The notes under the pieces were generated by a model. It worked only from the letters and a program-made list of their open reading frames with translations, had not been told where the DNA came from and did not search any database. This document shows, one piece after another, positions 2-26,716 of a DNA stretch of 64,000 nucleotides. The stretch is from Thecamonas trahens ATCC 50062 (lineage: Eukaryota > Protista > Apusomonadida), in contig NW_013657672.1 of assembly GCF_000142905.1 (NCBI RefSeq), forward strand, positions 328,244 through 392,243, in the 5' to 3' direction. The translations under genes were made by a program, and so were the position numbers. The stretch's first letter is position 1. Each line of letters begins with the position of its first letter.

Positions 2-3000
2 CGGGCTCTTCCTCCCGGCACGCCGCGGACCATCGAGCCCGCAGCAAACGTTGGGGGGTGGCCGGCGGCGAAAAGTACATCCACAACGGCATCTTCTACA
101 AGTTTGCGCTCGACGTCCACGGCCTGTACGGCGGCGATGACGGCGTGGCCATGAAGGTTGCCTCGCTTGAGATGACCTTTCTGCTTACTTGCATGGCCGA
201 GGAGGTGCCGGGCATCGCCTTTCCCCTCATGGCAGTCGTCGACTACAAGGGCTTCCGGCTCTCGGCCATGTCGCTTCTGCCCATCTCGGACTCGTCGCTT
301 GTGTACGGCTCGGACGACGGTGGGCAAAGCGTCCACGACGATGTCGATGCGCTGCACGCCCCACTCAACAACCTCGCCAGCCGTCTTAACCTCGCGCCGC
401 ATGTTGTCGGTATGTACGCTGCCTCGGCCGCCACCATCCCGTTCCCCGGCGACCTCGAAGTCCACACTGGCGCCGACGGCCGCTACTACCTCATCGACAC
501 GGCGCGGCTGATGCCGCCGATGCCGCCCAAAGCCTTTCCTGGCGTCCGCGGCTCGTTCCTGTTCAACCTCTTCCGCCCCGAGTTTGTCCGGCACTACTCG
601 GTCCCGCTCTGCTCCGACGCTTACACCAACTGGATTCGCGCCGATCCCGACGCCGCCTCGTATGGCGCCGCTTGCGATGCAGCCTTTGAACACTTGCTCA
701 CCACTACCATCCCGAGCTGTCTCGAGCAGCTCAAGAGCGACGTTGGCATTGCCAACGTCACTCCAAGCATTCTCGCCTTTAATCTCGGCGCCAAAGGCAT
801 CAACATTGCACTTCTCGGCCACGTGCTCTCGGCTCTCGACCTCTCAGTCGCCGATGATTGCGTCCTTGCCAACGCCATTCTCCACGACATGGTCGTCCGG
901 CTGCTCAAGGCACGACTCCGCCGCGTTTGGCGAACGTGTTCGCCTGCGGCGCTTGCCGAGGCGACGGCCGCCTTTGACGCTGTCGTTTCCGGGGCAAACG
1001 CGGACGCGGCCACCACTCTGTGGACCTCGTTGCTGGCCAGCGACATGGCCGCGCGCTGGCCTGGCGATTGGTCTTCGTGGCCCCAGCTTGCCGCCGGCAC
1101 CGATCTCCGCCGCTCTGCTGCAGACGGCAAGGCCGACGGCCTTGGCGTCGATCCTGACGCTGTCTTGCGCGACGTCAAGGCCGCGGTGGGGCTGCGCGAC
1201 GACGGCGCGTTTGAGCCACAAGCTCGCATGATGTCCTACGCCGCCGTCCTGGAAGCCTCGGACGCCTACGACGAGGCGATCGAAGAGATCCGGATTGGCA
1301 ACGTGGCCGGTGCCGACGCGCCCATGGATAAGGCGTCCAAGATGTTCGCCGAAGCCATCGAGTCCCAGCCCAATGCTCGTGGTATCTACCGCACCTGGTC
1401 GCGCGACCTCTTGCGCCTCGCTTTCGAAGCTATGGTCCTCCATCCGGCCGCGGCGGCCAGCTATACCATCCACGCCTGGTCTCGAGCGGCCAAGGTTCTC
1501 GAGCTCGACGACTTTTGCGCGACTGCAGTTGAAGTTGCTGTCGATTTGGCCAATCTTGGCATGATCAAGGCTTGCCTAGCTGCAGTCATTATCCGCGGCG
1601 GGCAGTCGCTTGAGACTGTGGTGGCCGGCATTGCCAAGGATGCCGGCATCAAGCTCGCAAACGGGACGACCATCACCGCCGAAGCGCTTGTCGAGACTGC
1701 TTTCAACCACTTTGCTCGCGCCCGCGAGCTTGGGCCGACCCTCATGACCGTTAAGACCAGCAAGGCAATCTCCCTCCGCCACCTCGCTGAAGCCAGGATG
1801 GTTGCTACGGGTGACCATGCGGCTCACGTTGCCGACCTTCGGCTGGCAGCTCTCGAGCTGGACATGGTTGTCACCGCCGAGCGCGACACGATGGGCACGG
1901 TCGACGCCCTCGCCCTTGCCGGCTCGCTCCACGCTAGCATTGCATCTTCGCTCCAGATGGGCTCGGCTCTAGCGAGCGAGGTCTTGAGCCATGCTCAACG
2001 AGCTCTGGACATCCTGCGCCGCGCTGCCGCCGTCGACGCCGACGCCGAACTCGTCCGGCTCAACTTGGCCAACACCCTCCTGCTGGTGGCCACCGTCTCG
2101 GGTGATGGCTCGCCTGCCACCATTGCAGCGCTGCGCGAGTGCCTCACTGTCTCTCGCGAGGCTGCCCGCCTCTCGGTCAAGAACACGCCGGCGGCACTGG
2201 TCCGCCTCGCCTCGGTCCTCCGCAACACCGCGTCGAGCTTTCCACCTGGCCCCGAGGCGCGCGCTGCCGTTGCTGAGGCGCTGGAACTGCTGCGTCCTCT
2301 CAAGAAGCGCATGCCCGAGTCGGCCGACGTCGCTGCTGAGATGCTCGGATGCCTTGTTGTGGCCGCCTCCCTGTGGACAAACGCCCGACTCAAGGGCGGC
2401 ATCATCGGCACGTGGACCGAGAGTGATCTCCGCGACGCGGCGGCGCACAGCGCAGCGGTCCAGGCTGCGCTAGAAGATCTTGATGCTACACTGGCGTCGG
2501 CTCGTGCGCGTGGCATGTCGCTCACTCCAGGCCTCGACAAGCAGGTCATCTATCTCCGCATCAAGTCCGCCGGTGTGCTGGTCCAGCTTGCACCGCCAGG
2601 CCAAGGGCTGGAGCTTCTCGCCTCGTTTGCGCCTGCTATGGAGGCTATGGCTTCCGAACCGACCCGCATCCGTGTCCATGCGCTGTCGATGATTGTGGGA
2701 GTGGCTTCCGACTGTGTTGTGGGCGGGGTGTCAAGCGGACCTTCAGCCGCTGCCCTCCTTGCCGCCGCCTCGCGTGCCGTTGCCTCGCTCATGAGCGTGC
2801 CGGCCGCCGTCGGGCTTGCCGATGCGCTCGAGGCGTGCTTTGATGGCGAAACAGAGCAGTCTGTGGTTGCGTTTGCAGCTGCACTGGAGAGTTTGCCGTG
2901 CGCGGAGCTTGACACCGAGAACATCAACTGTGCTCATGTTACCGAGAGCATCCGGTTCCTGATTACCGGCGCGTCGGGCGTGATCAAGGCGTCTGATGGC

Positions 3001-17439: not shown

Positions 17440-18425
17440 ATGGGCTGCAACGGGTCGAAGAACAGGGGTACGAACTGCTTAAGATGACTACCACTTGTGC
17501 CATCCCCTTCCCCACCTCATCCTCTGTATCCTCACTCACTCCCTCCCTCCCTCCCCCCCCTCCTCTCCTCCTCCCCTCCCCCTTCCCCTGTCCCTCCCCC
17601 CTCCTCGCCACCTACAGACATCCAGGAGTCACGGACACGGGTCGAGTCGACCAACACCTCCACACAGGCACGCCCCGCAGGTGCACAGGGCGCATCGTCA
17701 CAGCCTATTGCCAAGTATGTTCTCCCTCCCCCCACCCTCCCCCTCGTTCACCCATGCCCCCCCCCCCTCCCCTCCCTCCCCCCCCCCCCCCCTCCCTCCC
17801 CCTCCTGCCTGGGCTGCGAGTCACATGCGGGTGACTCGCACCATCAGCCACAAGCCACCATCGTCACCGAGGCTCAAGCCAGGACATGTCTACTCCCCAG
17901 GACCAAGATGCCGAGGCTGAGACTGTTGCTGTTGTTGCCCATAGTGCTGCTGCTGCCACCTTTTCCTCAGCTACCCCACGCCCACACTCACCCCTCCCTC
18001 CCCTCAGCCGCCACGATGCGGTGCTGCCGGACGACCAGATGGGCCGCTCGCCGCATGACATGCGGTTTGCTGAGCGCGAGTTCTTCTCTCACGTTGTGGA
18101 GCAGACGGCGTCGTCGCTGATCGACATCTCGCAGACGCCCGAGTTTCTGTCAGCCGAAGACGCGCGGATGCGCGAGGCCGACTACGCATCGCTGCTGGCA
18201 ACGGTGCAACCGGCGCCGGCGCTGCAAGCACTGCTTGCACTTCCGGCCGAGTCGAACGCCAACGCCGACCCGGCAGCAGTGCTGCAGGAGACGACCGTGG
18301 CGCCGGCGCTTGCCGAGCTCGGGGCCGAGGCTGTCGACGCCGTTGCCGCTGCCGTCGCCGGCATGGCCGTCGAGCCGATGGGCGACATTGTGATGGCGCT
18401 GCCGGACATCCAGGTCAACGCGTAG
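17440..18425 (+). CDS. LAMTOR1: Ragulator scaffold LAMTOR1/p18 homolog, 3 exons
   Basis: Exons 17440-17467, 17618-17714 and 18008-18425, phases consistent. N-terminal MGC myristoylation/palmitoylation motif. HVVEQTASSLIDISQ resembles human SILAKTASNIIDVS. C-terminal MAVEPMGDIVMAL. Confidence 0.8.
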
Positions 18426-18516
18426 AGGGTAAACTGCCACTCAAGGAGGCATAAGTAGGCCATAAGTAGGACAGCCGTACATCAATAGCATTCAATGGAG
18501 ATCAGAGAGACCAGCC

Positions 18517-19732
18517 TTAGTCGGTGCGCTCGGAAATGGCAGAGAGGGTGGCGATGCGCAGGGACTCAAAGACCGAGGTTACCTGCTGGATCTCAGCATC
18601 ACGCTGCTTGTCCATGGCCTGAGCGAATGCTTGGAGCTCGTCGGCAGAGAACCCCTCCCAGTTCCTCGAGTTGTCCTTTCCGCTCTCGGCCTGGCCGAGG
18701 TAGGCGGCATCGTCCTGGACCTCGTTCTCCTCCATGTACTGCAGGAACGACGGCTTGGCGCCACCGGCGCTGGCGGCGGCGGTGCGGGCGGGCGCAAGCG
18801 ACGCGCCACGGATCATGGTGCCGGACTCATCGTCCGAGTCGTTGAGCACCATGGTGCCGGCGTTGTAAAAGTCGTCGTCGTCGTCGTCGGCTGCTCCCGC
18901 GCTTGACGGCGCCCCCCGCCAGGATTGATGACCATAGTCCCGGCGTCAAAGGAGTCATCATCGTCGTCCGAGTTGGCGACGATGATCATGGTGCCCGAGG
19001 CGTAGTCCTCGCCCGACGGGTCCCACGGTGCGGCTTTGGCCTTGCCGCCAGCGCCGGTGCTCGATGACAGCAGCGCCTTGTGCAGCTGTGCCGAGCCCTT
19101 CTTGACCTTGGCGCGCATGGCCTTGTTCTCCTCGACAGCCTTGAGGATCGAAACAATCCATGCCTTGCGGACCGAGGCCGAGTCTGCCGCCATGGGATAC
19201 GTCCTGTTCCGTGTATGGATCTCAAAGCCAAACTTCTTCCTCTTGTGCACGTCGGCGATCTGGACCTTCCGGATCTCTGCAATCTTGATCACGCCCTGAG
19301 GCTGGGTCGACTCCTTCACCGCCGCTGTCCGCCACCGCATCCCGCATCAGCATCCGCCCCCATGTGAGTCTCTCCCCCTTCCCCACCTTGGACCATGACC
19401 GCGCCAAGGACGGTCGCCAAAAAACGAACGGCCCACCTGCACGCCCCCACAGGGAGACGACGGGGAAGGGGGCTATGGCAGGGTAGAAGGGAAAGAGACA
19501 GTACCACCCACCAAGGAAGGGATATACATGCATGGGTATGGCGTCTCTGCTCGCTGTACGTACCCGACTTGAAGTACAGGAGGAAGGCCCGGTTGAGAAC
19601 CATCCACCGCTTCTTCCACGTCTTGATCCGGTTGCCCTGCTTGAGCAGCCAGCCCTGGCGGATAACCTCGTCCGTCTGCAGTTCCACATTCTTGAGCGCA
19701 GAGCCCAACTTCTTCTTTCTCCGGAAGGACAT
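18517..19732 (-). CDS. PH domain + Hippo/MST-type linker + SARAH-like domain protein with no kinase domain; 2 exons, apparent 1-nt frameshift
   Basis: Exon 1 19732-19564 (RQGWLLKQGNRIKTWKKRWMVL), intron 19563-19325. Exon 2 completes the PH domain (RTYPMAADSASVRKAWIVSI). Frame is restored by one extra G at 18912-18917. Then GTM repeats, AKPSFLQYME and a SARAH-like helix. Confidence 0.75.
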
Positions 19733-20189
19733 GCTGTCCCCACCGGCGCCTCGACAAGAAGCGTGTTGCCCTCGCTCTGCACGCGGTCGCTCTCGCGCCC
19801 GTTGCCCGCCCGCCCGCTCGCCCTCCGGCCAATAACCAACCAACCGATCGATCGACCTCGTCCTCCTTCGATTAACTCTCGTTCAGATATTCGTTCCTCC
19901 CTCTCCCCCCCTCCCTCCTCCCTTGCCGCCCACCCGACCGCAACTGTCCTCGATCCCGATACTCCCTCCACATGTCCATCCCCTCCCCCTCCTTCCCCCC
20001 TCTCCCCGTCCTTGATCAACGACATCGGCCACCCTGATGTCGACCAACCGTTGGCCATGGCAGCGCCGACGTGGCCAACTCGGCCGAGTGACTCGCTCGC
20101 CGAGGCGACGCTGCAGCGGCGGTGTCTAGACGGTGTCGAGGCCATAGGGCTACACTAGACTCTGTAGCTCCGGGAGAAGCAGAAGCAAC

Positions 20190-21700
20190 ATGTTCCGCAT
20201 GGCAGGTGCTTCGTTTGCGCGCCCCACGCCTGCGTGGGCAGCCATGATGTACGCACCTTGAGCTTGAGCATGTGTCGGTGAGGGTGAGGCGGAGGGGGGC
20301 GTTGAGGCATTTTTTGAGTGTGTGCTGGGGAGGAGGATGGAGGGAGACTGATGGCGGAGAGTGGCGATGGAATGAGTAGGTGGCGGCGGATGTACGCCGA
20401 CCTGCCCGAGCACTACAAGATCACCATGCCTGCCCTCTCGCCGACCATGGAGGCTGGCAATCTGGCCGAGTGGGAGGTGGCCGAGGGTGAGGAGATCGCC
20501 AGCGGAGACGTCATGGCCTCCATCCAGACCGACAAGGCCACGCTCGACCTGGAGAGTACTGAGGACGGGTACGTTGCCCGGCTGTTCAAGGAGGCCGGGA
20601 CGGAGAACATCCCGGTTGGTGACCTCATTGCCATCATTGTCGAGGAGGAGGACGACGTGGCGGCGTTCAAGGACTATGACCCCGCGTCCGACGCTGGCGA
20701 CGCGAAGCCGGCGCCCAAGGCTGACGACGGTGCTCCCAAGGCGGCCGACGCTGCGCCCAAGGCGGCGGATGCCGCGCCTGCCGACGCCAAGCCGGCAACC
20801 GGCAAGGCTGCTGCCAGCAACCGCGTTGTTGCCTCGCCGCTGGCCAAGAACACGGCGCGCGAGTCGGGCGTCGACCTCGCGGGCATCCGCGGGACCGGTC
20901 CGGGCGGCCGGGTCGTCCAGGCCGATGTGCTGGAGGCTGTGGATACTGGCTCGCAAAGCCAGGTTGTGGCGTCAGGCGCGGGCGCTGGGGCGGTGGCGTC
21001 GGGTGCGGCGTACACCGACGTGCCGCTCGACAACGTCCGCCGGGTCATTGCCCAGCGGCTGCAGGAGTCCAAGCAGACCATCCCGCACTTTTACCTCTCG
21101 GTCGACGTCACCCTCGACGAGCTCCTCGAGGTCCGCTCCGAGCTTAACGCGCAGGGCAAGGACGAGTACAAGCTCTCGATCAACGACTTTGTGGTCAAGG
21201 CCTCGGCGCTCGCCCTGCAGCAGGTGCCCGAGGTCAACTCGTCGTGGCAGGGTGACTTTATCCGCCAGAACCACTCGTCGGACATCTCGGTGGCGGTCGA
21301 CACCGGAAAGGGCCTCATCACCCCCATCGTCGACGCGGCCGAGTCGCGCGGCCTGGTCTCGATCTCGCACAAGGTCAAGGACCTTGCTGCCCGCGCCCGC
21401 GAGAACAAGCTCGCCCCGCAGGAGTACCAGGGCGGCACCTTTACCATCTCCAACCTCGGTGCCTACGGCGTCTCGCACTTTACTGCCATCATCAACCCGC
21501 CGCAGTCGTGCATTCTTGCTGTCGGCTCGGGCTCCAAGCGCGTTGTGCCCGACACCTCGTCCGAGGCCGGCTTCAAGGAGTCGAACGTCATGACCGTGAC
21601 TCTCTCGTGCGACCACCGCGTCGTCGACGGTGCTGTCGGCGCCCGCTGGCTGCAGGTCTTCAAGAAGTACGTCGAGAACCCGCTGTCGATGCTGCTGTAG
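20190..21700 (+). CDS. DLAT: Pyruvate dehydrogenase E2 (dihydrolipoamide acetyltransferase), mitochondrial, 2 exons
   Basis: Exons 20190-20248 and 20380-21700. Lipoyl domain MPALSPTM...IQTDKAT, E3-binding GTGPGGRV, catalytic DHRVVDGAVGA. Confidence 0.96.
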
Positions 21701-21743: not shown

Positions 21744-23876
21744 TCACGGCGCCATCGGCGCCAGCCGCTGCGCCCGGGATGGGCTGGGCGAGCCAGCCGC
21801 GAGCTTGCGCTGCTGCCGCCGCTGCATGACAGCGTATCGTTCGGCAGGCGACAGACCGGCGGCGACAAGCACGTCGGTGGCTGTCGTCCGCGACGAGGGG
21901 GCGTGCAGCGGGCGGAGCGGGGCGAGCGGCGGCGCAAGCCCTGGCGGCGACGACGTCGGCGACGACTGCGAGACGCTGGCCCGCGCTCGGAGCGCGACAA
22001 CGCCGGCAGCCATATCGTCGTCATCATCGCTAGCGCCTTCTCCGCCCAGTTCGCGGCTGGCAGAGAGCTCGGCCGCGATGTCAAGCGACTCGGGCAGCTG
22101 CGGCTCGTGGTGGAGGGCGACGAGGGAGAGCGATTCGTTGCCCATCGAGTCGCCGTCGGGATCAGAAAACGTTGAAGGAGAGATGGGTGAGGTCGGCGAG
22201 AGCGAGGTCGGAGGCGGCGAGCCAGCATGAAGCTGGGCGACTTCCGGCGGAGGCTTGGCGTCTGGTGGGGGCTCAAGGAGCAGATCGTCAAGTGTGAGGT
22301 GATGGGCGCGGACCCGGTGGGTGGTGAGGACCGGCGGCGGTGGCGAGGCCGAGCCGAGAGAGGAGTGTGAACGGGGCGGGTGGTGCGAGGGCGAGCGCGA
22401 GGGCGAGCGCGAGGGCGAGCGTGACGGCGTCGCCAACCGTGGGTTGGTGGAGAGCGTTGCGCCGTAGCGCGAGGGCATGACCCGGATCGGCGAGTCGAGC
22501 GAGGCCGCAAAGGCGTGCGGCGCCTTGCCCAGGGCTTGCAGCTCAACCTCGGTGATGTCAAGGCAGCACGGCTCGCAGACGCCAGCTTCACGGGCGAGAA
22601 ACGCGGGATCGCGGCGGAGCATGCGATAGTCGAGTGGCGTGAGCTTTGGCTCGAGCGCGAGAATGATGCGGGGAATGCCCGGGGCGAGGCTCGACGAGGC
22701 CGAGCGGCCAGGCGAGGCCGAGGTACGGCGGTGGTGGGTCATGACTGCGCGGTAGGTGACCGGATACAACCGGTTCTTTTCGACAGGATGCAGGCAGGCC
22801 GGGCATGGGATGTAGTTTGAGCGCTTGGACGACTTGCGGCGGGTGGTGGCGGCGGTGAGGCCCTGCAGACGCGAGCGGCGACGGGCAAGCGCATCCGAGC
22901 CGGAGCGCGTGTCTGTGGCGCGGAGCGAGAGGGCGACAGTACGGATGTCTGAAGGCATGCCGATCTTGCCGACCTTGGACTCGACGTCGAGTGACGAGAA
23001 GTAGGTGAACCAGAGGCGGTCTGCGGCGTCCTGCTTGACGTTGAACACCATGCCGCGGACGACGTACGATTGCGGCGAGGCAGCGGTGATGTGGGCGGCC
23101 AGGTGCTCGGCCATGGCCTTGAGGCGCTTGTTCAGATTGCGGTTGTTGAGGACCACGGGCAGCGAGTCGTGCAGTTCGCCTTCGTGGGTCGCTCCGCGGG
23201 CGTTGCGGGTGATGCGGAGCTCGGAGAGCTTGTGCACCGAGTCGCGGCGCTCGATGTCGAGCATGTCCGGCGCCCATGCCACACGCAGCGTCGAGTTGTA
23301 CGCCCCGCGCGGCGCCACAAACCTTTGCACTATGCCGTTGCGTGGCAACGAGTCGTACAGCAGCGTCCGGAGCGAGGCCTTGTCGTGGAACTCGGCGCAG
23401 GTGAACGGCTCGCCGTCCGAGTTCTCCTCGGTCGTGATCGAGTACGCCACAATGTCAAAGACCACCGCCGAGCGGTCGACCTTGATCAGCTCGCTGTATA
23501 CCTCGTCAGTTGTGGTCTTGGCTGCCCGCTTGCGCATGATCGAGCCGGTCTTCTTCGAGGTAAAGTAGTAACGGTCGAGTCGGCCGTTGCGAATGACCAG
23601 CGTGTCCGGGATGCGGACCGAGGCCGAGGTATAGGTCTGTGGATGCTTGGCCCACAAGTAGTGGTACGCGTTGTCGACATGGCCCGCACCATGCCCATAG
23701 TCCAACGGCGGAGCGCTCTGTCGCCATCTCCGCGACGTCGAGGTCGAGACTACGGCCTCGACCGACAACGGGCCGGTCTCCTCCTCCTCCTCGGCCTCCT
23801 TCCCGCCTCGCCCATAGCCCATCGCCTTGCTTCTCACCGACCACAACGAAGATCCCGATGCCCTCAACGAGGCCAT
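21744..23876 (-). CDS. Conserved uncharacterised protist protein (possible ATP-grasp-like N-terminal domain, two CxxC pairs, disordered Ser/Pro tail)
   Basis: Long ORF with coding-like composition. Motifs IPDTLVI, YYFTSKK, NGIVQRFVAPRGAYNSTLRVAW, CPAC...VCEPC. Confidence 0.65.
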   Translation of the reverse strand: MASLRASGSSLWSVRSKAMGYGRGGKEAEEEEETGPLSVEAVVSTSTSRRWRQSAPPLDYGHGAGHVDNAYHYLWAKHPQTYTSASVRIPDTLVIRNGRLDRYYFTSKKTGSIMRKRAAKTTTDEVYSELIKVDRSAVVFDIVAYSITTEENSDGEPFTCAEFHDKASLRTLLYDSLPRNGIVQRFVAPRGAYNSTLRVAWAPDMLDIERRDSVHKLSELRITRNARGATHEGELHDSLPVVLNNRNLNKRLKAMAEHLAAHITAASPQSYVVRGMVFNVKQDAADRLWFTYFSSLDVESKVGKIGMPSDIRTVALSLRATDTRSGSDALARRRSRLQGLTAATTRRKSSKRSNYIPCPACLHPVEKNRLYPVTYRAVMTHHRRTSASPGRSASSSLAPGIPRIILALEPKLTPLDYRMLRRDPAFLAREAGVCEPCCLDITEVELQALGKAPHAFAASLDSPIRVMPSRYGATLSTNPRLATPSRSPSRSPSRSPSHHPPRSHSSLGSASPPPPVLTTHRVRAHHLTLDDLLLEPPPDAKPPPEVAQLHAGSPPPTSLSPTSPISPSTFSDPDGDSMGNESLSLVALHHEPQLPESLDIAAELSASRELGGEGASDDDDDMAAGVVALRARASVSQSSPTSSPPGLAPPLAPLRPLHAPSSRTTATDVLVAAGLSPAERYAVMQRRQQRKLAAGSPSPSRAQRLAPMAP

Positions 23877-24014
23877 GCCTCTTTGCTGTGGCAAGAGAGA
23901 TGTTATGCCTGTGAACTGTCGTCAGCTCGGGCGAAGGAGGTGCGCGTGGCAAGGGAAGCGGCATGGAAGGCACCGAGCCGGCCTAGTCGGAGGCAGCCAC
24001 ACACTTGAGTCAGT

Positions 24015-24591
24015 ATGGAGAACCCTCTGGATCTGCTGCGGCTGGCGCTGAACGAGCGGGTGGTGGTGAAGATGCGGGGAGAGCGGGAGCTTGCCGGGAA
24101 GCTGCATGTACGTGTTGTACATGGGCGTGTGTGTGTGTGTGTGTGTGTGTGGTGGGAGGGGGGGGGGTGNNNNNNNNNNNNNNNNNNNNNNNNNNNNNNN
24201 NNNNNNNNNNNNNNNNNNNNNNNNNNNNNNNNNNNNNNNNNNNNNNNNNNNNNNNNNNNNNNNNNNNNNNNNNNNNNNNNNNNNNNNNNNNNNNNNNNNN
24301 NNNNNNNNNNNNNNNNNNNNNNNNNNNNNCCCCCCCCCCCCCCCCACCCCACCACACCCTCCTTCCTCTATCATTCTTCATGCCTACTGTCTTTCTGCGA
24401 CTCACGTACGCTCACCATGCTCGCGAGAGCAGGCCTTTGATCAGCACCTCAACTTGGTGCTGTCCGACGTGGAGGAGACCATCACCGTCAACGAGGTCGA
24501 CCAGGAGCCCACGACAACCACCCGCAAGCTTGACATGCTCTTTGTTCGTGGCGACGGTGTCATTCTCTGCTCTCCGCCGCTGCGTGTGTAA
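24015..24591 (+). CDS. LSM3: U6 snRNA-associated Sm-like protein LSm3, 2 exons
   Basis: Exon 1 24015-24107 ([28 protein letters not shown]). Intron GTACGT...GCAG contains a gap. Exon 2 24433-24591 ([16 protein letters not shown]...[15 protein letters not shown]). Confidence 0.95.
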
Positions 24592-24883
24592 ATCAACCCA
24601 AATCCCCCCCCCCCCCCCTGGCCATCGTCGGCACCGTACCATGATCGGCCACAACCCGACCCACAACCGAGTCTTCCATGTAGTGCAGCAACAATACCTT
24701 TTATCAGTGCTCTCGTCCATAGCAAGCAGTGCGTGCCAGACCTTGATCTCCCCCCCCCCCCCCTCCCCCCTGGCCTGCCACCCGATCCGCCGCCCACCCG
24801 CAACCACCAGCCACTCGAGCAGCCACCATTCCGCAGAACAGCAGCAAGGCTACGTTTTACCACACTTCACAACCAGCACCAGC

Positions 24884-26716
24884 ATGGCCGCATCGTCATC
24901 TGCTGCCGAGGTAGGCACAGTGGAAGAAGGAGAAAATGCACCTCACATGCATCCCCCATGTTACAGTCACATACTCACCGCACTCTACATCCCCCCCCCC
25001 CCCCATTCCCATATGGCTGGTCTCTACAGGAGGAGGGTCTGGAGAAGGCCTCGGCCGCCCGCCAGTTCTTTGAGGACTTTTACTCGGCAACGGGTTCGTA
25101 TGTTGTTGGCCGTATCAACCGCTACACAGAGTTGCAGAACCGCATCGACTCTGGCGAGCTGTCTGGTGCTGCCGCAGAAGCTGCTCGTGATGAGTTTGCC
25201 CTTGCAGAGCGCCGCTTCTTGCGGCAGAGGTACGTTGCTTGCTCCTCCTCCCCTCGCCCTTGATCGCGACTCGTTTGTTCGTCCGCACGCGTCGCCCGCA
25301 CTGGTGCCGCCACCTGCCCGGCGGCCTCCTGCAAGCCTGGCCAGATCGCCTGTGAGGCGATGTGGGCGTATGCAAGAGTGTAGCATGTGTTGCACTTGGT
25401 CGCGCTCCATGTCCCCTCTTGTGGCTCTGTAGCAACTGGACTTGCCTGCGTGTGGCGGCAGTCGGGTAGGCAGGCAGTGCGGACTTGGAGCGGCAATTTT
25501 TGTGTGGACAGAGGTGGAGGGCATCAGCAGGAGCAGGAGCGAGGTCAGAGGAACAGCGACTCACAGGAGGGATCGGATGTGGTGCAGGCGCAAGCGAATC
25601 AAGCTCCATGACTTTGACCTCATCAAGATGGTGGGCAAGGGTGGATATGGTGAGGTGTATCTTGTGCGCAAGAAGGACACGACCGAGGTGCTCGCGCTGA
25701 AGAAGATGAAGAAGTCGGCGATTCTCAAGTCGCAGACGGAGATCACGCACCTGCGGACGGAGCGCAACGTGCTCGCCAACCAGCAGTCGCGGTGGCTGGT
25801 GCAAATGGTGTACTCGTTCCAGGACGCGGCCAACGTGTACATGGCGATGGAGTTTGTGCACGGCGGTGACGTGCGGACGCGGCTGACGGCTGTGGACACG
25901 CTCTCCGAGGCTGACGCGCGGTTCTACATTGCCGAGATGTTCCTCTCCGTCGACGCTCTCCACCAGGCCGGCTACATCCACCGTGACCTCAAGCCGGAGA
26001 ACTTCCTCATCGACTCGAATGGACACATCAAGCTGACCGACTTTGGCCTCTCCAAGGGCAACATGCTCACCATCCAGTCGCAGACGATGAAGCGTGGCAT
26101 GCTGCCGAGCTCCAAGGACGGCGACCGGCGGTCGATCGGCGCCCGCAAGCGCGTCTTTGGCTCGATCAAGCGCAACGCCCGCGAGCTCGCCTTTTCCCTC
26201 GTTGGCTCGCCCGACTACATGGCTGTCGAGATGCTCCGTGGCGAGGGCTACGACTTTTCCGTCGATTACTGGGCTCTTGCCGCCATTCTCTTCGAGATGA
26301 TTGTCGGCTTTGCCCCGTTTGCCGACGACGACATCGAGGCTGTCTTCCGCAACATCTTCAACCACGAGGTGACCCTCAACTTCCCCGACATCTACACGTA
26401 CATGTCGCACGAGGCATGGGACCTCATCACCTCGATCCTCAAGGAGCCCGCCGACCGGCTCGGCAAGGGCGGCATTTCGGAGATCAAGTCGCACCAGTTC
26501 TTCGACTCGATCGCGTGGAAGGCGCTCGGGACCGAGTCCGGGCCCTCGCCGCCCTGGGTTCCCGAGCTCTCGGACGACACCGACACCCGCTACTTTGACG
26601 TCTACGAGGAGGATCCCAACGCGGTTGCCGCCGAGGATGCCGCCGACGCCGATGCCAAGTTCCAGGCCTTCCCGGCCTTTACCTTTAAGCGCCGCCGCCC
26701 GGACGCCTCGTCGTGA
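24884..26716 (+). CDS. NDR/LATS-family AGC kinase, Dbf2/Sid2-like, 3 exons
   Basis: Exons 24884-24910, 25030-25229 and 25588-26716. N-terminal MOB-binding region (FFEDFY...ERRFLRQRRKR), GKGGYGEV, HRDLKPEN, DFG, insert followed by AFSLVGSPDYMA, hydrophobic motif FPAFTFKR. Confidence 0.9.

Follow-up and report, generated by a model that had tools for sequence, protein, structure and literature searches.

We analyzed a minus-strand gene at positions 18517 to 19732 of a 64,000-nucleotide (nt) stretch of the genome of Thecamonas trahens ATCC 50062 (contig NW_013657672.1, positions 328,244 to 392,243), hereafter the window. Thecamonas belongs to the Apusomonadida, a lineage close to the root of the Opisthokonta. 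Judged from its translated sequence, the gene encodes a 325-amino-acid (aa) adaptor in which a PH domain is joined to a segment paralogous to the non-catalytic part of the Hippo/MST kinases. The direct basis for this is the gene structure, its expression, an intact reading frame, the homology of the modules, conservation in a second species, and the presence of genes for Hippo, MOB, NDR and a class-I-type phosphoinositide 3-kinase (PI3K). On balance, we lean towards reading the adaptor as a phosphoinositide-targeted protein that partners Hippo through SARAH and displays predicted MOB-docking sites. A kinase-less architecture of this kind had been proposed by a model that saw only the letters of the window and a list of their open reading frames (ORFs), here called the sequence-only reading.

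To define the gene, we examined reads over positions 18400 to 19900 from four studies, comprising two DNA metagenomes (X1 and X4) and two metatranscriptomes (X8 and X10). Exon 1 (19564 to 19732, minus strand) starts with the ATG at 19732-19730, comprises 56 codons plus one base, and encodes an N-terminal basic stretch and strands beta1 to beta3 of the PH domain, as seen from the translation (MSFRR...LYFKS) and the Pfam PH match. It ends at the GT at 19563-19562. The intron that follows (19325 to 19563, minus strand; 239 nt, GT..AG, phase 1) was kept in both DNA metagenomes and was skipped exactly in RNA contigs from both metatranscriptome studies, where 19324 is joined to 19564 (CT..AC on the plus strand). 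After the AG at 19326-19325, reading resumes at 19324, with frame A codons from 19322. Exon 2 (18517 to 19324, minus strand) encodes the remaining half of the PH domain, a linker, a hydrophobic motif of the HS type and the SARAH domain, and terminates with the TAA at 18519-18517; its delineation is based on the translation, the RNA contigs and a metagenomic ORF of 274 aa, P0001. Frame A of exon 2 yields the PH second half followed by SGTMII and AGTMVIN. Frame B (18915 to 18520, the last 132 codons) yields AGTMVLN, SGTMIR, AKPSFLQYME and the helix WEGFSADELQAF.

The two frames of exon 2 meet at a run of six G (18912 to 18917, minus strand) that should be a run of seven. An extra C after 18911 on the plus strand is present in each of the DNA runs X1 and X4 and the RNA runs X8 and X10, and P0001 reads exon 2 in one unbroken frame (...INPGGGAPSSAGAADDD...), extra Gly codon included. 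Because the extra base occurs in all four runs, we attribute the frameshift in the reference to an assembly error, and the correct frame is continuous between the PH domain and the stop codon. Numbering of the joined exons in the corrected frame gives a complete product of 325 aa. The splice and the one-nt correction that the sequence-only reading had proposed are thus both borne out by reads, and translation of the exons and frames reproduced every peptide piece it had quoted.

The shifted reference frame, together with a truncated public gene model, could also be taken to indicate the decaying remnant of a Hippo duplicate, or to mean that the one-base repair created an artefact. This is very improbable. 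The seventh G is present in DNA and RNA data sets from four studies as well as in P0001, environmental metatranscriptomes contain the spliced mRNA, the orthologue from a second species has an intact frame, and the strain variant at 18939 (X1 and X10), in the Gly codon of an AGTM motif, is synonymous. As far as reads can decide the matter, we therefore exclude the pseudogene or artefact reading, because they show both the seventh G and the splice.

The RNA contigs also bear on the extent of the transcript. They cover 18521 to 19755 as tiles, with exon 2 tiled from 18521 to 19324, and the most 5' contig, which is spliced, begins 23 nt upstream of the ATG without a further joint. The spliced RNA contig contains no kinase exon, and a divergent gene begins 585 nt upstream, at 20318. 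Given the position of that gene and the lack of a further joint, there is neither room nor evidence for a kinase exon, and no Pkinase match was found on any piece of the gene, in agreement with the kinase-less product of the sequence-only reading. That reading had also named separate PH and SARAH mRNAs as an outcome that would count against it. No alternative joint was seen in the RNA contigs; evidence at the contig level does not prove a single molecule.

Two further differences between the reads and the reference lie within the intron. Both DNA runs (X1 and X4) have an extra A after 19418, a second homopolymer miscount <500 nt away from the first, which suggests that run-length errors are frequent in the reference assembly and that other gene models may be cut short. 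At 19328-19329, inside the intron next to the 3' splice site, one low-depth contig of X1, an estuary metagenome, contains six additional nt (CCGCCA) and a second contig differs by C>T; these look like strain-level intron polymorphism.

The public model of this gene, AMSG_02106 (226 aa, annotated as uncharacterized or PH domain-containing), was recovered by our profile search. It consists of exon 1, exon 2 in the shifted frame and a spurious tail, and it lacks the final 133 residues. Its 3' end is wrong because of the homopolymer error, and surveys that use AMSG_02106 are therefore blind to the SARAH domain; the concern of the sequence-only reading that automated annotation could miss the gene was justified. 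A published survey lists Hippo for Thecamonas and looked only for kinase plus SARAH (PMC7035326).

We assessed the relationship of the adaptor to Hippo kinases through their tails. Using the Thecamonas Hippo as query, we collected 120 Hippo/MST kinases, reduced their post-kinase tails to 39 non-redundant sequences and built a hidden Markov model (HMM) that excluded the PH proteins. This HMM matched the adaptor tail with 62.3 bits as a single collinear alignment that begins in the acidic Thr-Met region, takes in the HS motif and ends with the SARAH domain, and matched the tail of the second-species protein (P0002) with 46.7 bits. The best of 4000 shuffled controls scored 11.4 bits. When the apusomonad sequences were left out (37 tails), the adaptor and the second-species protein still scored 58.6 and 41.0 bits, respectively. 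The tails of the apusomonad Hippo kinases themselves scored 45.9 and 47.1 bits, in two pieces. The claim of an MST1/2-type linker is supported by these scores.

The acidic linker (18757 to 19133, minus strand) is predicted to be disordered (pLDDT <50) and contains four Thr-Met motifs, centered on T168 (18992-18990), T186 (18938-18936), T214 (18855-18853) and T226 (18819-18817). It is followed by the HS-type motif KPSFLQYM (18733 to 18756, residues 247-254), recognized by alignment with Hippo/MST kinases. In a MAFFT alignment (A3) with chimpanzee STK4, AGTMVLN (T214) falls on LGTMVIN, SGTMIR (T226) on EGTMKR, and KPSFLQYME on KPSFLEYFE, so the resemblance of AKPSFLQYME to the MST1 peptide AKPSFLEYFE, which the sequence-only reading had pointed out, also appears in an alignment. 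Other Hippo kinases have [YK][RVK]P.F[LM] at the HS position, and the Pro is invariant in alignment A3. The adaptor keeps KPSFL.Y and GTMV.N, which by sequence comparison are ancestral tail motifs, better than the apusomonad Hippo kinase does.

The function of these motifs is documented for human MST2. Its linker has seven Thr-Met motifs that are autophosphorylated, MOB1 binds a bipartite ligand composed of one phosphorylated Thr-Met (pTM) motif and a downstream hydrophobic HS motif (FMDYF), and only the Thr-Met motifs near the HS motif are functional for MOB1 (Ni et al. 2015, PMC4511216). AKPSFL..Y corresponds to the HS half of this ligand (PMC4511216), which strengthens the idea of MOB docking. 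T214 precedes FLQYM by 36 residues and T226 by 24, within the range of 8-72 residues seen in STK4, and in sequence both have the spacing of a bipartite MOB1 ligand (a Thr-Met motif within ~42 residues upstream of the HS motif).

The last 48 residues of the adaptor (residues 278-325; 18520 to 18663, minus strand) form the SARAH domain, assigned from PDB profile matches and an AlphaFold2 (AF2) model. A single tail sequence matched only two RASSF5 SARAH chains in the PDB (E 0.014). With a two-orthologue profile searched against 177,635 PDB sequences, the RASSF5 SARAH domain was the top match (E 2.3e-5, 27.4 bits), and the SAV1 SARAH domain followed at E 0.75. AF2, run on the Hippo-tail alignment, predicted a short helix (residues 86-88 of the modeled piece) and a 41-residue helix (91-131) with pLDDT 92-96, which is the h1/h2 shape of a SARAH domain. 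A Foldseek comparison of the AF2 model with the PDB gave no match with an E of 0.001 or better; first in the list was 6lcs_A (E 5.4), an "Fv-clasp" that contains the MST1 SARAH helix and that we do not count as evidence. We accept the C-terminus as a divergent SARAH domain whose sequence resembles the RASSF type more than the MST type. Elsewhere in the genome, a weak Mst1_SARAH match (L004) and a weak match from a self-search (L002) were considered as paralogues and rejected as ordinary coiled-coil or low-complexity sequence (L005 was left aside).

The PH domain is encoded at 19134 to 19666 (minus strand; residues ~23-120) and is interrupted by the intron. The Pfam PH model (PF00169, cut-off 25.1) matched exon 1 over profile positions 1-35 (35.8 bits, E 1.2e-8) and exon 2 over positions 40-104 (29.5 bits). 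Since the two parts of the profile are complementary, the exons make up one PH domain, and the domain proposed by the sequence-only reading is above the cut-off in both. The first half is most similar in the PDB to the PH domain of GRP1/cytohesin-3 (E 4e-8), then to DAPP1 and PLEKHA5 and, lower down, to Akt. It keeps the GRP1-type pattern K..R..T.K.R..Y (WLLKxGxRxKTWKxRW...YF in the GRP1 alignment), including the basic beta1-beta2 signature K-x(n)-[KR]-x-R and the beta3 Tyr. The nearest solved PH domain to the second half is that of TAPP1, at a weak E of 0.009. A look-alike search in the ESM Atlas returned generic PH clusters only, all <0.85. The PH domains of GRP1, DAPP1 and Akt read 3-phosphoinositides, and from these resemblances we propose that the adaptor PH domain is of the predicted 3-phosphoinositide type. 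The Thecamonas genome has three loci with a class-I PI3K Ras-binding domain (PI3K_rbd), which makes the presence of 3-phosphoinositides in this organism plausible.

We searched for further proteins of this architecture. When the tail was compared exhaustively by phmmer with 1.84 billion representative proteins, P0001 and P0002 were the only matches, and a profile word search returned P0001, P0002 and AMSG_02106 only. The search for kinase-less PH plus SARAH proteins that the sequence-only reading had suggested thus yielded one orthologue beyond Thecamonas. P0002 (322 aa; E 3.5e-5) comes from another organism, is encoded on a 3-kb contig of a public run and is 40% identical to the adaptor. Its first residue falls at the position in the PH domain where exon 2 begins, with 67 nt of contig upstream. 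In an intact frame it has the PH domain, three GTM motifs, the HS-type motif AKPAFLRYL and the SARAH opening NWDAFSVEEL. Between the two species, identity is 43% in the PH second half, 60% in the HS motif and 44% in the SARAH domain, vs 9% in the spacer between HS and SARAH, the pattern expected from sequence for motifs under selection. We found no description of a PH-SARAH protein in the literature, consistent with the earlier statement that this is not a described class of SARAH partner.

The components with which such an adaptor could act are present in Thecamonas. We identified one Hippo kinase with a clear SARAH domain (39.7 bits; P0004, 409 aa; L003, G000:C53:166963-170103, ORF 496-1656, plus strand) and at least four MOB loci. 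Within the window, a 424-aa ORF at 25442-26716 (plus strand) encodes a split protein kinase domain whose best PDB matches are Cbk1 and STK38/NDR1 (~2e-81 to 5e-81), in one stretch across the whole kinase. This NDR-family kinase gene is ~5.7 kb from the adaptor gene on the opposite strand, a proximity that may be due to chance. The Hippo kinase P0004 has an unusually short linker with two Thr-Met motifs only and a divergent HS-like motif (PEYLVKI), and there may be a division of labor between it and the kinase-less adaptor.

We modeled residues 338-409 of this Hippo together with the HS-plus-SARAH part of the adaptor (P0001 190-274) in three runs, alongside three controls. The interface score ipSAE was 0.70 in each of the three runs vs 0.00 for the best of the three controls; of 78 solved complexes, 51 attain the mark set for this score, as do 2 of 108 mismatched pairs. 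The runs share at least 87% of their contacts, and the pLDDT of the partner is 68. The predicted pairing is antiparallel (Hippo 387 with adaptor 247-251, 369 with 265-269, and 398-402 with 236-240), an arrangement that matches solved SARAH dimers. For the Hippo SARAH domain, the model bears out the structural check suggested by the sequence-only reading as a likeness to known dimers, not as a demonstration of binding.

SARAH domains are able to homodimerize, and the adaptor could accordingly be a bivalent membrane binder that forms homodimers only, acts independently of Hippo and carries its Thr-Met and HS motifs as relics or for another kinase. In line with this, a BLASTP comparison of the adaptor tail with the Thecamonas Hippo tail was insignificant (E 0.93), with only a DDDD..GTM..GTM stretch matched. 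A maximum-likelihood tree of the tails grouped the two adaptors together (100/99) and the three apusomonad Hippo tails together (100/99) on separate long branches. The deep forks of this tree are poorly supported, and we therefore claim no date for the duplication. We consider a Hippo-independent scaffold improbable: the Thr-Met, HS and SARAH segments stand out as conserved islands at 40% overall identity, with the spacer at 9%, the heterodimer model passed while its controls were zero, and the adaptor tail outscores the apusomonad Hippo tails on a pan-eukaryote Hippo-tail HMM.

Under the favored reading of the adaptor as a Hippo partner, a four-step mechanism can be outlined. First, as the complex model predicts, the SARAH domain of the adaptor would form an antiparallel heterodimer with that of the single Hippo kinase. 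Second, by analogy with the human and fly proteins, the adjacent Hippo would phosphorylate the Thr-Met sites of the adaptor in trans, chiefly T214 and T226; the MST2 kinase domain does phosphorylate linker fragments or kinase-dead MST2 in trans (PMC4511216; Bae et al. 2017, PMC5663475). Third, on the same analogy, the pTM and HS motifs would act as a bipartite ligand that opens MOB1, and an NDR-family kinase would be brought in. Finally, the PH domain would place the assembly on membranes containing PI3K products, again as extrapolated from human and fly proteins.

The same dimer could have the opposite effect. An adaptor-Hippo SARAH pair might break up the Hippo homodimer needed for trans-autophosphorylation, and its Thr-Met and HS motifs might sequester MOB1 or attract PP2A together with an SLMAP-type FHA protein, so that Hippo-NDR signaling would be dampened at membranes rich in phosphatidylinositol trisphosphate (PIP3). 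The adaptor SARAH domain is nearest to that of RASSF5, and the Hippo-adaptor heterodimer model fits a decoy equally well. Moreover, in MST2 the pTM sites are also ligands of the SLMAP FHA domain and recruit STRIPAK, with the consensus E/D-G-pT-M-x-R/K (Bae et al. 2017, PMC5663475). P0002 carries DGTMVR and the Thecamonas adaptor SGTMIR. Against this, the canonical HS motif is kept; it matters for MOB1 and lies outside the six residues bound by FHA, which leans towards MOB1 docking. We regard a dominant-negative role as possible, if on the unlikely side.

Several points weigh against the favored reading of a Hippo partner that docks MOB. The phosphorylation, MOB binding and lipid binding of the adaptor are predicted, by analogy with studied proteins. 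With RASSF5 as the nearest SARAH relative, an inhibitory effect on Hippo is as plausible as an activating one; RASSF5 reportedly regulates MST2 autoactivation, going by the title of a 2013 article by Ni. The gene is found in two species only. The lipid specificity of the PH domain is a guess from sequence, the second half being only weakly similar to any solved PH domain. The Pfam model Mst1_SARAH (PF11629) scored 14.8 bits (E 0.03), under its cut-off of 23.1, Nore1-SARAH (PF16517) gave no match in a whole-genome scan, and P0002 alone gave no match to the Pfam SARAH models at E up to 1. The SARAH domain of the sequence-only reading, which had been likened to MST1, is thus supported, with qualifications: the RASSF5 profile match, the h1/h2 helices and the predicted antiparallel pairing are in its favor, whereas the Pfam model stays below cut-off and RASSF5 is closer than MST1/2. 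Finally, the score of the modeled complex may reflect memory of solved MST-RASSF5 or SAV1 SARAH dimers, and it therefore indicates likeness, not binding.

A more far-reaching and more doubtful extension of the favored reading, which we put forward tentatively, is that apusomonads have a "split" Hippo. The kinase would have kept a short, divergent tail, and the MOB1-docking linker would reside, with a RASSF-like SARAH domain, on a PIP3-reading adaptor. If this were true, assembly of Hippo, MOB and NDR would be gated by PI3K lipids at the membrane, forming a direct link from PI3K to Hippo, and the adaptor would represent a fourth class of SARAH partner besides the kinase, RASSF and Salvador.

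The remaining neighbors of the adaptor gene in this part of the window were annotated from their translations and by Pfam. The divergent gene upstream is a 460-aa ORF (20318-21700, plus strand) that has the 585-nt, G-rich intergenic region in common with the adaptor gene. A DHRVVDG motif in its translation points to a lipoyl-domain 2-oxoacid dehydrogenase E2 acyltransferase. Two ORFs between the adaptor and the NDR kinase (21744-23894, minus strand, 716 aa; 24005-25432, plus strand, 475 aa) showed no Pfam match with an E of 0.001 or better.

We compared the adaptor with the known systems that share its parts. With Hippo and MST1-MST2 (STK4/STK3) it has in common the order of elements, namely an acidic linker with G-T-M-[VI], a [KR]P.FL.Y[FM]E motif and a C-terminal SARAH domain, as well as the two most conserved sites, LGTMVIN and EGTMKR in STK4. 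It differs in having a PH domain instead of the Ste20 kinase, and it is best described as a paralogue of the tail, not as a member of the kinase family. RASSF1-6, and RASSF5/Nore1 in particular, are likewise non-catalytic and have a C-terminal SARAH domain, which is the best match to that of the adaptor and shares its W..FS..EL..F start; they also have a membrane-directed, signal-reading domain toward the N-terminus. They pair with Hippo/MST through SARAH, a pairing that is predicted for the adaptor. RASSF proteins differ in using an RA domain for Ras-type GTPases (with C1 in some) and in having no linker with Thr-Met and HS motifs for MOB1 docking; no Pfam RA match was found in the adaptor or P0002, whose N-terminal parts matched PH families only. 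Salvador (SAV1, WW45) is a scaffold that forms a SARAH heterodimer with MST and modulates MST activity (PMC5663475), and its SARAH domain is matched only weakly by our profile, as given above. It has WW domains, of which Pfam found none in the adaptor or P0002, and lacks both the PH domain and the Thr-Met/HS linker.

The PH domains of GRP1/cytohesin, DAPP1, TAPP1 and Akt share with the adaptor the GRP1-like first half, the basic pattern and the beta3 Tyr, and TAPP1 is the one nearest to its second half; they are coupled to Sec7, SH2 or kinase modules and in no case to SARAH. Because the adaptor comes from the Apusomonadida, near the opisthokont root, it bears on the state of the Hippo module before animals. 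It would provide a naturally occurring test of whether phosphorylation of the linker in trans, with placement at the membrane, suffices to assemble a Hippo-MOB-NDR core, and it suggests that a MOB1-docking linker is able to exist apart from the kinase. The SARAH signaling architectures known are kinase-SARAH, RA-SARAH and WW-SARAH, and PH-linker-SARAH, known to date from one protist lineage and two of its organisms, adds a fourth architecture of a SARAH partner.

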